Shown here: positions 27,157 through 32,132 of the stretch, piece by piece
Layout: each line of letters opens with the position of its first letter
Numbering within the stretch: position 1 is the first letter of the stretch
Sequence record: AJ748296.1
Length of the DNA stretch: 33,641 nt
Strand: one strand, 5' to 3'
Notes under the pieces: model-generated
Seen by the model: only the letters and a program-made list of their open reading frames with translations
The model's database searches: none
What the model was told of the DNA's origin: nothing
Made by a program: the position numbers and the translations under genes

Positions 27157-27305
27157 TTCCTGTTTCACCTATCTCTAAAAATCAAAAATTCTATGACATT
27201 TTTATATCTTTATTTTTTGGAATAAGTAGGATTAATATTTGGAATTTGAGAAAAATTATCGATAGAATTAGGTAATGTTAAAAAATAAAAAAAATAAAAA
27301 AAAGA

Positions 27306-27608
27306 TTAACTTTCTAAAAGTAATCTAACATAATCTACAATATCTTCTTTTATGCACAAAAATTTCTTGTCTCTTTTAACTCTTTTTATCTTTATGAAAA
27401 AGATATTTTTATCAACTAATCGTTTTATTCTAAGATATCCGAAATATTGGTATCGATTTGCATCCTTTTGAAAAAGAAATAGTTTACCTTCACTAGTGTA
27501 CATAGGAATGCATAAATCATTATCGCTATCTTTCTGTGCAAGAGAAAAAAATCTAATCAGAAGTTCTTTTTGCTTAGGATACAATTTAATTTGGACTTCT
27601 TGACTCAT
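27306..27608 (-). CDS. 100-aa protein (SIRV ORF112 family), possible winged helix
   Basis: Start MSQEV after a GGTGA RBS; early-type promoter at 27641-27660; LYPKQKELL and [13 protein letters not shown] suggest a wHTH (weak). Confidence 0.7.
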
Positions 27609-27640
27609 TTCTTTCACCTTAATATCATATATGTATAAAC

Positions 27641-27660
27641 TCATATATAAAGCTTTCTCT
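27641..27660 (-). promoter_or_regulatory. Early-type BRE+TATA promoter AGAGAAAGCTTTATATATGA
   Basis: Same motif at 29552-29572, 31425-31444, 31964-31984 and 32331-32352. Confidence 0.7.
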
Positions 27661-27678
27661 ATCTTTTTATCTCTTTAA

Positions 27679-27718
27679 TTTTTCAACCTTCTGAATTAAT
27701 ATCATAAACTTGAGAAAA
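27679..27718 (-). repeat. Conserved intergenic element, copy 2
   Basis: tttttcaa ccttctgaattaatatcataaac ttgagaaaa; 23-bp spacer. Confidence 0.8.
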
Positions 27719-27812
27719 ATTATTGATAAAATTAGATAATTTATGGAAAATTTAAAATTAGAAGAATTAGAATTAGTATTGAAAAAATAAAAAAAATTAT
27801 TAATAAAAAAAA

Positions 27813-28538
27813 TTAATCTTTTGGATTCTTTTTCGGTACGGGATGTGAAAACAATAACCATTTACCGCCAAATTCTGTAAATCCAACATTATCATGTTCT
27901 GGCGAAATAATTTTTACAACTGGTGGTTCTGGTAAATATACTAAAGCTCCTTCTCCCGGCATTATATGTAATTGTTTATATTTTAATACATTAATATCAA
28001 ATTCAATAATATGATTATAAATACCAATTATTCTAGTTTTTTCAAAAAGTTCTTCATTAATTTTTTCTATCTTTAACGGCGGTACTTCATATACACTTAA
28101 ATGTCCTTGTTTACCATCAGGATAAAATGCCGGCGAAAATTCTAATTTTTCTCCTTTATAATAAATATCAAATAATTGAATTGAATAATTATCATACTTT
28201 ATTATTATTGATGAACTCTTTAATGAAACTTTAGATAAATCTAAATTTATTAACATTGATTTAATATCATTAATTTTTCTGAATATTTTCTGTTTGAAAG
28301 TAATATTGAATATCGGCGGATTAGGTGTATAGTATATTCCGTTAGTTTCCTTAGCTTTATCAACTTTTATTTTATTTTCTAGAATTGATACTTCAAAACA
28401 GCCTTGAAATGTTAATCTACTTCTTGAAATGTACTTTTCACAATTTATAAATTTATCTGTTACAGAAATTTTATTTCCATCAGGAAGTAAAAAAACATTT
28501 GGAAGATAATCTAATTTTTTTCTTTCTTTTATCTCCAT
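27813..28538 (-). CDS. AcrIIIB1-family anti-CRISPR paralogue (ORF241)
   Basis: Shares RKKL..LP.VFL, SRS.LT..GC, GIYY.P.P, QGHL, PG.G.L.Y.PE and WLLFSH motifs with ORF252; position just downstream of pvap as for SIRV2 gp48. Confidence 0.75.
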   Translation of the reverse strand: MEIKERKKLDYLPNVFLLPDGNKISVTDKFINCEKYISRSRLTFQGCFEVSILENKIKVDKAKETNGIYYTPNPPIFNITFKQKIFRKINDIKSMLINLDLSKVSLKSSSIIIKYDNYSIQLFDIYYKGEKLEFSPAFYPDGKQGHLSVYEVPPLKIEKINEELFEKTRIIGIYNHIIEFDINVLKYKQLHIMPGEGALVYLPEPPVVKIISPEHDNVGFTEFGGKWLLFSHPVPKKNPKD

Positions 28539-28772
28539 TTATTTCACCAATTTATCATTCTGTATATGACATTTATAAATTTTTATTTAAGTTTTTACGT
28601 TTATATCTCATTATTTTTGTATTTTTTTATACTTATAATTTCTGTAGAAATACAATTAATATAACAAAAATGAGAAAAATTATTGATAAAATTAACTATT
28701 TAGAAGAAAATTTAAAATTAGAAGAATTAGAATTAATATCTAAAAAATGAAAAAAATAGTTGATAAAAAAAA

Positions 28773-29531
28773 TCAATCTTGACCTGATCTCCTGGGTCTT
28801 GTATGGCTGAACAATAACCAAGTGTCTCTATTAACGTTAACTTCAACTTCTTTATGGTCAGAACTTTCAAGTTTAACGTGAACATCTTCTGGAACATAAA
28901 GTAATGTCCCACTACCTGGAGTAACGTAAAGGTTCTTAAACATCAATATAGACTTATCAAAGGTAACTTTATGGTTAAAGATCATAAATTCGCTAACTTC
29001 CGTAAACAATTCTTTATTAATCTCTCTTTTTTGACCATCATTATCATAGTAAAGTAAATAAACATCTTTCGGCTCTGGAACACTATAAATCCTAAGATGA
29101 CCCTGTTCTGCAAGTAACGGAAATTCATAAATCAATCCTTTGAAATAAATATCAAATACTTCAATTGAATAATTGCTATATTTTACCAATAACCATGGTT
29201 GCCTTGGCGAAATTTTCGATACGTCTAAGCTCATTAAAAATTGTTTCAAGTCATCAAGATTCCTAATCGCTTTCTGTCGAAAAGTAATATTGATTATTGA
29301 AGGATGCGGAACATAATAAATTCCTTTGACCTCTTTCAGAGTATCAATTTTTAACATTGATCCGACTGTATAGCCTGTCACACAACCTTCTTGGGTTAGT
29401 CCAGATCGGGATACGTAATGAACACAGTTTATATAATTCTTGTCTAATGTAAACTTATTTAAATAGATGTCCAAAAAAACTTTGGGTAAATTGTTTAACT
29501 TTTTCCTTACACTTACCTCCACTTTATTCAC
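28773..29531 (-). CDS. acrIIIB1: AcrIIIB1-family anti-CRISPR (ORF252)
   Basis: About 250 aa, directly downstream of pvap as SIRV2 gp48; C-terminal WLLFSHTRPRRSGQD; early-type promoter at 29552-29572; GTG start. Confidence 0.75.
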   Translation of the reverse strand: MNKVEVSVRKKLNNLPKVFLDIYLNKFTLDKNYINCVHYVSRSGLTQEGCVTGYTVGSMLKIDTLKEVKGIYYVPHPSIINITFRQKAIRNLDDLKQFLMSLDVSKISPRQPWLLVKYSNYSIEVFDIYFKGLIYEFPLLAEQGHLRIYSVPEPKDVYLLYYDNDGQKREINKELFTEVSEFMIFNHKVTFDKSILMFKNLYVTPGSGTLLYVPEDVHVKLESSDHKEVEVNVNRDTWLLFSHTRPRRSGQD

Positions 29532-29669
29532 CGATATATAATATGCTAATTCTCATATATAAAGTTTTCTCTATGTTTTTACATTTCTATTTTTCATCTT
29601 CAAAACTTGAAAAAAATAAAGAATCAGAATATAAAAAAGATTAAAAAAATAATACCTTAAAAATTAGAA

Positions 29670-30045: not shown

Positions 30046-30300
30046 TTAAGATTTTTTAGTACGCAATATTTGAATTTCATATAATAAAGCTTTTTCATTA
30101 TCTGTTAACTCTTTAGTATTAATTTTTATTTCAATATTATCATTTGAAGAATAAATAAATTGACTAAATGCTAATTCAATTAATTGTTGATATTCTTCTT
30201 CATTAATTTCAAAAGACATCTTAAATTTTAAACTTAATTCTTGTATATTAGAATCTTCAAAAAACAAATCTATAATTTTTTTAACTTCTTTAAAACTTAT
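30046..30300 (-). pseudogene. Shortened AcrID1-family paralogue with ATA where the ATG is expected (pseudogene or non-canonical start)
   Basis: GGGGA-aagaaaa-ATA-AGT-TTT-AAA-GAA; the frame has no ATG before residue ~27 of the family-aligned region; the track TTG start at 30336 lies in the TGTCATA box. Confidence 0.55.
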
Positions 30301-30357
30301 TTTTCTTTCCCCAATATTTTCATAAAAATATGACAATTTTAAATTTTTATCACTCTA

Positions 30358-30398
30358 TTTTTTCAACCTCCAGAATTAATATCACAAACTTGAAAAAA
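30358..30398 (-). repeat. Conserved intergenic element, copy 3
   Basis: ttttttcaa cctccagaattaatatcacaaac ttgaaaaaa; perfect 9-bp inverted ends. Confidence 0.88.
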
Positions 30399-30484
30399 AT
30401 TATTAATAGAATTAACTAATATTTAAAAAATAAAAAATAGAACAAAATAAGAATTAAATAAAAGAAAAAGAAAAAAAGAAAGAA

Positions 30485-30793
30485 TTACTTTTGAATTGGT
30501 TTATTTATGAATGGATTTAATTTTTGATTAAAGACTTCATCTGCATGTGAAAGTGCTAAAATATTAGCATTATTATCATAAATTATGTATAATTGATAGA
30601 AATAATGACAAACTTCTTCGGCATCTCTGTAAAGTTCTTGTAAAGAATTCCAGACTATACCATATGCCGTAATTAGACCATATTTTGGAAGTTTATTATA
30701 GCAGTGTGATACTAAAATTTCATCATTATATGTGACTAAAATTTCTAGACTTTCTTTATTTACATTTATTCCAGGTATCATTATCTTTCTCAT
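30485..30793 (-). CDS. Hypothetical 102-aa accessory protein
   Basis: GTGATAG RBS-like sequence; TGTCATA box at 30820-30826 (minus strand). Confidence 0.75.
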   Translation of the reverse strand: MRKIMIPGINVNKESLEILVTYNDEILVSHCYNKLPKYGLITAYGIVWNSLQELYRDAEEVCHYFYQLYIIYDNNANILALSHADEVFNQKLNPFINKPIQK

Positions 30794-30987
30794 TCTCTAT
30801 CACTAAATTTCTCTAAATATATGACATTTTTATATTTTCATTTAACAAAATCGATAAGAAGTAGAATTAATATCTGAAAAATGATAAAAATTAAGCATAG
30901 TTATAGGTATATACAAAAAATAAAAAAGATAAAAGAGAAAATAAAATTAGAGAAGAAAAAAATGAGAAATTAACTTAAGAAAAAAAA

Positions 30988-31392
30988 TTAATATAACTCT
31001 AACTTAACCCAGCCCTTACTCACACTAAAAACATATAATTTTGCATGAGATATCAATTCTCCCTCATAATCGTTACCACTTTTATGTAATATCACAACTA
31101 CTCTACTTTTTGGTATAATTACATAATCAACTTGGTCAGTACTGGGATAGTTATAAATTTTATCGATTACTATCTTTTCCACTTTTCCATATAGTATTTG
31201 CATTTTTCCATAGTCACTGAAACTGCTACCTGGTCTACTCCATTCGCTAATTCGCAGTAGAAATTTAGCCTCTGGACTACCTTCTTGTAACGTCTTTTGA
31301 ATCAATTGCTTTAACTCGCTTTCATTTAACTCTTCTTCACTTAAATTAATTTCTTGATCTGAATTTTGACTTGAATTTTCTTCTTGACTCAT
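30988..31392 (-). CDS. Hypothetical 134-aa accessory protein with acidic low-complexity N-terminus
   Basis: GGTGGA RBS; early-type promoter at 31425-31444. Confidence 0.8.
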   Translation of the reverse strand: MSQEENSSQNSDQEINLSEEELNESELKQLIQKTLQEGSPEAKFLLRISEWSRPGSSFSDYGKMQILYGKVEKIVIDKIYNYPSTDQVDYVIIPKSRVVVILHKSGNDYEGELISHAKLYVFSVSKGWVKLELY

Positions 31393-31641
31393 ACTTTATC
31401 CACCATATTTACATATGTAAAAAGCAATATATAAAGCTTTCTTCATTTTTTTACATCTCCATTTACATAATAAATTGCATTTTTGATATACATAATATGA
31501 TAAATAAGCTTTATCTCTTAATATTTTTAATCTCCTGGAATATTATAACAATAGTGATAAAAATTAAAGATAGAATTGGATAATTAGAAAAAAAATAAAA
31601 AAAGGAAATTGAAATGAAATTAGAAAATTAAAAAAAGAAAT

Positions 31642-32001: not shown

Positions 32002-32042
32002 TTTTTTCAATCTCCAGAATTAATATCACAAACTTGAAAAAA
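32002..32042 (-). repeat. Conserved intergenic element, copy 4
   Basis: ttttttcaa tctccagaattaatatcacaaac ttgaaaaaa. Confidence 0.88.
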
Positions 32043-32132
32043 ATTAAGCATAGCCTTAGCTAATTTAAGGAAAATTAAAACTAGGAAAAAGAAGAATTAG
32101 AACTTACAAATAAAAAAATAAGGCTAACTTTT

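Follow-up and report, generated by a model that had tools for sequence, protein, structure and literature searches.

Two intact and deeply diverged AcrIIIB1-family genes in tandem in SIRV1 variant XX, probably joined by recombination

SIRV2 gp48 (AcrIIIB1) is the characterised prototype of the family to which the two genes considered here belong. It binds the Cmr-alpha and Cmr-gamma complexes and protects only against the targeting of middle and late genes (PMC10681719), it is expressed immediately after infection (PMC11065993), and it also inhibits subtype I-A, as AcrIA4 (bioRxiv 10.1101/2024.04.02.587611). Its family of anti-CRISPR (Acr) proteins is present in 'mostly a single copy per genome', and the early promoter motif has a prevalence of 0.75 in it (PMC11065993). 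The window analysed in the current study, which comprises the entire SIRV1 variant XX genome (AJ748296; 33,641 nucleotides (nt), with a GC content of about 25% throughout), carries two genes of this family side by side, the open reading frames (ORFs) ORF241, named ORF241d in the record, and ORF252. The acrIIIB1 homologues of SIRV1 are coloured in Figure 1A of PMC10681719, and in Bhoobalan-Chitty et al. (Nat Commun 2024, PMC11065993), Supplementary Data 1 lists CAG38859 and CAG38860, the products of ORF241 and ORF252, as 'ADG/Acr, AcrIIIB1' and gives SIRV1 gp40 and gp41 the same AcrIIIB1 label. Therefore, the existence of both genes, their homology and their family assignment are already known, and the detail added here is incremental. 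We propose that ORF241 and ORF252 are two intact genes of old AcrIIIB1 lineages, which were joined by recombination and which probably widen or prolong coverage, and we consider this explanation as a whole to be likely.

The preliminary description of this stretch had recognised a tandem pair of deeply diverged AcrIIIB1-family genes, and the comparisons bear this out. An end-to-end alignment of ORF241 and ORF252 spans 253 columns, at 42% identity and 60% positives (BLASTP, E 7e-66), a similarity far beyond chance. ORF252 is 65% identical to SIRV2 gp48 over 99% of its length (E 6e-110) and ORF241 41.5% identical over 100% of the length (E 5e-47), and both proteins match phrog_6092 end to end (E <= 1e-87); scans of both against Pfam and NCBIfam found no model for the AcrIIIB1 family. 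All 17 columns that are invariant in a 36-sequence alignment of the family are kept in ORF241 and in ORF252. Like gp48 (ORF249 of SIRV2, 30775-31524), the pair lies between the P98 gene and acrIA3/gp47, in the right-arm terminal anti-defence cluster in which the family is expected, beside acrIA3/gp47 and AcrID1 homologues. The gene order ORF98 (P98) - ORF252 - ORF241 - ORF112 - ORF95/94 (AcrID1 family) is syntenic with SIRV2 gp49 to gp45, and the pair is bounded on one side by ORF98, the pyramid protein gene, and on the other by ORF112, the acrIA3 orthologue. Across the ORF241/ORF252 region, the SIRV1 prototype and variant XX are 98.5% identical. As judged from their sequences, both genes are members of the AcrIIIB1 family, and we infer their anti-CRISPR activity from the 42% and 65% identity to gp48, for which inhibition has been measured. 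The AlphaFold2 (AF2) models of both proteins are confident, with a predicted local distance difference test (pLDDT) score of 91.0 for ORF241 and 91.7 for ORF252, and are mostly beta with one helix and the same strand order. The ORF252 model has an extra beta-hairpin at residues 155-168. ORF241, unlike gp48, does not have the 12-residue hairpin found in most of the family, and it carries a 4-residue insertion. The modelled fold resembles no solved structure: a sequence search of the PDB with both proteins gave chance matches only (E > 0.5), and fold searches with both AF2 models gave nothing convincing (Foldseek best E 0.019, with a TM score of about 0.1; VIA-align best Z 4.2). The old label 'ribonuclease T1-related' of SIFV0016 received no support from sequence or fold searches.

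The phylogeny places ORF241 and ORF252 in deeply diverged lineages that are not each other's sisters. In a careful maximum likelihood (ML) tree of 24 family members, ORF252 groups with SIRV2 gp48 and with the ORF249 allele of the SIRV1 variants AJ703804 and AJ703805 (support 99/98), and ORF241 groups with a relative on the Logan contig L004 (100/100). In a quick tree of 46 rows, ORF241 falls with L004, L005a and P0007 (Shimodaira-Hasegawa-like approximate likelihood ratio test, SH-aLRT, 93) and ORF252 with gp48, ORF249 and P0014 (SH-aLRT 98), and a node with an SH-aLRT of 86 unites the two groups. An approximately unbiased (AU) test, within the limits of the model, rejects a sister clade of ORF241 and ORF252 that excludes gp48 (p 3.9e-5). 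A recent in situ duplication, the origin against which the preliminary description had set its own, is thus not what the phylogeny with gp48 recovered. Such a duplication in SIRV1, followed by very fast arms-race divergence, would account for the tandem position of the genes, the 85% identity of their 3' flanks and their common TATA-Shine-Dalgarno-start layout; it is nonetheless exceedingly improbable, given the result of the AU test, the occurrence elsewhere of an 80% identical relative of ORF241, the near saturation of synonymous sites between ORF241 and ORF252 (proportion of synonymous differences, pS, 0.68) and the nature of the conserved flank, which belongs to an eight-element family shared with SIRV2 and is not a private duplicate. 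The 80% identical relative (P0002) was found by word search on the 966-nt contig L004 (run SRR28178318), which has the TGTCATA promoter of ORF241, its 5' intergenic sequence and its 3' element, with 90% nucleotide identity overall. A relative with 51% identity was found, also by word search, on the Logan contig L005 (run SRR28178316), and a scan of IMG/VR for relatives returned SIRV1 and SIRV2 alone. The sequence P0003 was read with translation table 11 and ends at the TGA stop, instead of the gene caller's readthrough of TGA as W.

Two Logan contigs show further arrangements of the family. On L005 (105-1847), two AcrIIIB1-family genes are separated by an AcrID1-like DUF1374 gene, and an overlap between the second copy and the DUF1374 gene's end (1353 vs 1363) makes co-transcription of those two probable; having more than a single family member is therefore not peculiar to SIRV1. 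L020, from the same sample as L004 (run SRR28178318), carries P0014, the relative in the gp48 group, beside a divergent ribbon-helix-helix (RHH) gene of the 56B/SvtR type, a pairing that matches SIFV2 gp12 and gp13.

Both reading frames are intact, and each has its own TATA box, its own GGTGA Shine-Dalgarno sequence and a T8 run at the stop codon; by this sequence layout, ORF241 and ORF252 are two independent transcription units. It might be argued that ORF241 is redundant and in decay, its promoter weakened and the gene without a role of its own, as only a degraded early-motif match is left (11.8 vs 36.6 bits for ORF252) and the beta-hairpin of 12 residues that most family members have is missing. 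We consider this very unlikely. The frame, the Shine-Dalgarno sequence and the TATA box of ORF241 are intact, the ratio of nonsynonymous to synonymous divergence (dN/dS) is 0.35 against its 80% identical relative, all family-invariant residues are kept, and the model is confidently folded, all of which contradicts pseudogenisation. In addition, the gene is identical in SIRV1 and variant XX. The relative on L004 has the deletion and the promoter of ORF241, and therefore the ORF241 form is stably inherited. Both genes appear functional on the evidence of their sequences and models.

Whereas SIRV1 variant XX has two family copies at this site, SIRV2 and the SIRV1 variants AJ703804/5 have one, and the SIRV1 population as a whole holds four family alleles (ORF241, ORF252, ORF249 and ORF260). 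The locus has diverged unevenly from that of SIRV2. Between variant XX and SIRV2, the pS of ORF356/gp44, ORF94/gp45, ORF95/gp46 and ORF98/gp49 is 0.32-0.38 and the intergenic regions of the locus are 78-81% identical, whereas ORF252/gp48 is saturated, with a pS of 0.775 against about 0.35 in the flanking genes. This difference indicates that alleles have been exchanged at the site and not vertically inherited, so that even the copy of the gp48 lineage is an old allele in a younger scaffold. A direct repeat of 127 nt, with 85% identity between its copies and a spacing of 960 nt, follows the two stop codons. With nhmmer, it falls into a family of eight related elements, which lie downstream of genes in the right arm and terminal repeats; the repeat is shared with SIRV2, AJ703805 and L004, in which the element after ORF252 is conserved. 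In each element, a T-run is followed by a core that is conserved around TAATTTTATCAATAATTTTTCTCA and GATATTAATTC. The best copy has a 26-codon ORF (MRKIIDKI...) on the opposite strand, and other copies stop after 9 codons; the element could be a terminator combined with a regulator site, or the relic of a small gene.

An ancient tandem duplication that arose once in an ancestral rudi- or lipothrixvirus, with both copies kept in SIRV1 and one of them deleted from SIRV2 and from other variants through recombination between the intergenic repeats, would require no import from another virus. It would agree with the sister relationship of the ORF241 group and the gp48 group (SH-aLRT 86), with the direct repeats around the 960-nt unit, which would ease deletion, with the two family members lying close together on L005, and with the ORF241-like gene of L004, which is preceded by the intergenic type that normally follows acrIIIB1. 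A simple deletion between the 127-nt repeats, however, would give an intergenic region of the type that follows ORF241, and SIRV2 and AJ703805 have the type found after ORF252. Furthermore, the saturation of ORF252/gp48 relative to flanks with a pS of about 0.35 points to exchange and not to vertical descent, and most of the viruses that bear the family have a single copy (PMC11065993); we therefore regard ancient duplication as unlikely. Read most economically, these sequences point to co-infecting viruses that exchanged cassettes and underwent unequal crossing-over where the intergenic sequence is conserved. The proposal of the preliminary description that one copy was imported from another virus survives in part: recombinational acquisition is plausible in view of the 3' elements, the single copies elsewhere and the saturated ORF252/gp48, but the argument from codon composition with which it was supported does not hold, as discussed below. 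Two neighbouring genes depart from the prevailing divergence in opposite directions. ORF112/gp47 has a pS of 0.63, and ORF96 (30046-30336) has a pS of only 0.013 to SIRV2 gp50 (L001:4072-4293) over 73 aligned codons, with neighbours at about 0.35, which suggests that the ORF96 segment was exchanged very recently between the SIRV1-XX and SIRV2 lineages.

For all 46 genes, the sequence upstream was surveyed and scored with leave-one-out position weight matrices (PWMs), and two recurrent promoter types were found. The early type, a purine-rich B recognition element (BRE) followed by TTTATATA and usually by TGAG, precedes seven genes, i.e. both Aca8 copies, ORF90, ORF112, ORF134b, ORF114b and ORF252. 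In the general type, which precedes at least 19 genes, among them core ones such as the dUTPase and Holliday-junction resolvase units, the TATA box is directly followed by (T)GTCATA. A GTC element after the TATA box is reportedly typical of SIRV promoters, as SIRV1 transcript mapping is said to have indicated, and the 19 promoters found here are in line with this. The early promoter claimed for ORF252 is clear, with 36.6 bits in the early class against -8.1 bits in the GTCATA class; like the promoter of gp48, it shows the early type, and it is 75% identical to the ORF112 promoter over 61 nt. ORF241, the promoter core of which differs from that of gp48, fits the GTCATA class better (21.3 bits) than the early class (11.8 bits), yet this residual early score lies just above the highest value from 2000 shuffles (9.7), and all other non-early genes score -8.9 or less; the promoter is therefore best described as a hybrid and not as a clean second class. 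It resembles both the ORF95 promoter (88% identity over 24 nt) and the region upstream of ORF252 (83% over 29 nt). An alignment with SIRV2 accounts for the hybrid nature of the ORF241 promoter: the entire gp48-gp47 intergenic region of SIRV2 has a collinear counterpart in the intergenic sequence behind ORF252, including the position of the gp47 early promoter, at which SIRV1 shows a weakened BRE and TGTC in place of TGAG. The same promoter precedes the 80% identical relative on L004. The earlier assignment of the two genes to different promoter classes was thus right in direction but too sharp, the more so as ORF241 is treated as motif-bearing in the published screen. The sheet of that screen contains motif-bearing genes only, and its eight entries for variant XX, six of which are taken into account here, would fit the seven early-class genes plus ORF241 (PMC11065993).

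A common layout, in which the TATA box is followed after 23 nt by GGTGA and, after a further 5 nt, by the start codon, is found in ORF241, ORF252, SIRV2 gp48, ORF249 and L004. Because of this layout, the true start of ORF252 is most likely the GTG at 29522, giving a protein of 249 amino acids (aa), and the supplement of PMC11065993 has amended the start to the same position. A similar shift concerns the neighbouring ORF112: its annotated ATG (27644) falls within its own TATA box, and translation probably begins at the ATG at 27605, which follows a GGTGA motif, for a product of 99 aa; this agrees with the preprint (10.1101/2024.04.02.587611), according to which gp47/AcrIA3 starts 13 residues downstream of its annotation.

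The preliminary description had also noted that ORF252 is richer in G/C-ending codons, and this is correct. The GC content at third codon positions (GC3) is 0.290 in ORF252 (rank 44/46 genes; Fisher p 1.3e-5) and 0.129 in ORF241, a usual value for this genome (mean 0.171, 46 genes), and the difference persists at the 103 identical aligned residues, at which 15 codons of ORF241 and 29 of ORF252 end in G or C (p 0.026). GC3 is raised in all seven early-motif genes, with a mean of 0.286 against 0.153 in the GTCATA class (Mann-Whitney p 6e-4, the same without ORF252); it therefore provides no evidence that ORF252 was imported, and as a marker of horizontal import it is ruled out. Moreover, the gene that stands out in composition is ORF252, the copy of the gp48 lineage at the site of gp48, and not ORF241. 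The values also follow the clades, at 0.22-0.30 in the gp48 clade (0.30 in gp48 itself, similarly raised) and 0.12-0.13 in the ORF241 clade; SIFV2 gp13 has 0.31, ORF260 about 0.14-0.15 and the Usarudivirus copies about 0.14. GC3 thus goes with promoter class and lineage. Its elevation in the early-motif genes could result from exchange with lipothrixviruses of higher GC content or from codon selection for immediate high expression.

Other members of the family and of the cluster provide further points of comparison. ORF249 of AJ703804/5 is a single copy at the same site and in the same intergenic scaffold, but is 65% identical to ORF252 and 74% to gp48. ORF260 of AJ703802/3 belongs to the same family and the same virus population, but it forms a separate long branch and lies in a different arm, where (L008:2106-3186; L009:3093-4173) it overlaps the upstream ORF105 by 20 nt and is without a promoter of its own; the ORF105 promoter is of the TATA plus GTCATA type. 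In SIRV3, the gp48 slot beside the AcrIA3 homologue is occupied by gp40 (AcrIIIB2), which likewise inhibits type III-B (PMC10681719; bioRxiv 10.1101/2024.04.02.587611) but is an unrelated protein, and a tblastn search of SIRV3 gave no match to ORF241 or ORF252. The expansion of AcrID1 in Icerudiviruses is similar in that several diverged paralogues of one Acr family occupy the termini of SIRV1, SIRV2 and SIRV3 and only some of them carry the early motif (prevalence 0.51), whereas AcrID1 has a different fold and targets I-D Cas10d, and AcrIIIB1, in contrast, is mostly single-copy (PMC11065993). The next cassette downstream of the pair corresponds to gp47 (AcrIA3), a wHTH (winged helix-turn-helix) repressor of the host I-A cas promoter (bioRxiv 10.1101/2024.04.02.587611). 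The positions of the features are given in Table 1.

Table 1. Genes, promoters, translation signals and 3' elements of the ORF241/ORF252 locus.
Feature	Position	Strand	Description or score
ORF241 (ORF241d; CAG38859; SIRV1 gp40 equivalent)	27813..28538	-	AcrIIIB1-family, ORF241 lineage
ORF252 (CAG38860; SIRV1 gp41 equivalent)	28773..29531	-	AcrIIIB1-family, gp48 lineage
ORF112, SIRV2 gp47 (AcrIA3) orthologue	27306..27644	-	Next cassette downstream; 58% identity to gp47
ORF252 promoter, early anti-defence motif	29545..29584	-	Purine-rich BRE + TTTATATA + TGAG; 36.6 bits early PWM
ORF241 promoter, hybrid	28561..28600	-	Core TTTATAAA + TGTCATA; distal early-motif residues (CGTAAAAAC...)
ORF112 promoter, early motif	27633-27672	-	47.2 bits
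ORF252 Shine-Dalgarno	29516..29532	-	GGTGA, 5 nt, GTG start; 23 nt downstream of TATA box; from sequence
ORF241 Shine-Dalgarno	28533..28548	-	GGTGA, 5 nt, ATG start; from sequence
Conserved 3' intergenic element after ORF252	28654..28780	-	From T8 terminator-like run at stop; nhmmer E 9e-25, best match
Conserved 3' intergenic element after ORF241	27694..27820	-	Second direct-repeat copy; nhmmer E 8e-24
Eight 3' elements	27230-27297, 27694-27820, 28654-28780, 30374-30442, 30835-30905, 31538-31609, 32018-32131, 1477-1588

We propose a series of linked steps for the origin and use of the pair. Two sister subfamilies would have separated long before the divergence of SIRV1 and SIRV2, with ORF252 as the allele of the gp48 lineage and ORF241 as a representative of a second lineage, which also circulates in an uncultured virus, promoter and flanks included. 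The tandem array most likely arose by homologous or unequal recombination between co-infecting viruses, and the conserved intergenic scaffold, i.e. the 3' element and promoter region that bracket each anti-defence cassette, may have served as the substrate. With its canonical strong early motif, ORF252 would be an immediate-early gene that is repressed at about 1 h, by analogy with SIRV2. The ORF241 promoter would derive from the same scaffold, with a weakened BRE and with the TATA plus GTCATA core used by most viral genes, so that ORF241 is probably expressed less strongly at early times and/or for longer. By homology, the two proteins are likely to bind class 1 effector complexes of the host, i.e. 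Cmr and, since gp48 is also AcrIA4, possibly I-A Cascade. Wider or longer coverage is the most likely reason for the retention of both copies, and it may be speculated that ORF241 acts through a dose that comes later or lasts longer, or by covering a different target, such as another Cmr module or I-A. A division of specificity (Cmr-alpha against Cmr-gamma/beta, or Csm) or of infection stage between the two genes, as suggested in the preliminary description, would be plausible. A stronger version, in which the paralogues have become sub-functionalised (Cmr III-B against I-A Cascade, or different Cmr modules) and at the same time form a temporal relay, is doubtful. In the relay, an immediate-early burst from ORF252 would be shut off by Aca8 and followed by a sustained middle and late supply from ORF241 under the general promoter, which would fall in the middle/late phase, where AcrIIIB1 protection is known to matter.

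Several observations weigh against the explanation that we prefer, i.e. old lineages joined by recombination and used for wider or longer coverage. The deeper nodes of the phylogeny are weakly supported, with open forks in the careful tree and the SH-aLRT of 86 in the quick tree, and the tree fits a gain in SIRV1 and a loss in SIRV2 alike. L004 spans 966 nt only, so that the ORF241-like gene is seen there apart from any wider genome context. With regard to timing, the Usarudivirus acrIIIB1 promoter combines an early-type BRE and TATA box with GTCATA, and therefore the GTCATA core alone is no proof of late or non-early expression; the screen of PMC11065993 likewise counts ORF241 among the early-motif-bearing genes.

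The presence in SIRV1 of two versions of one anti-CRISPR protein, 42% identical and under non-identical promoters, offers a natural test of a split of task or timing within a family, and as gp48 acts on both III-B and I-A, the pair would also test how the duties of a dual-target Acr are divided. Furthermore, the locus documents rudiviral anti-defence genes as exchangeable cassettes in a conserved intergenic scaffold, a picture that rests on saturated alleles between moderately diverged flanks, on the 3' element in eight copies and on the shared raised GC3, and that bears on how archaeal viruses assemble their anti-CRISPR repertoires.

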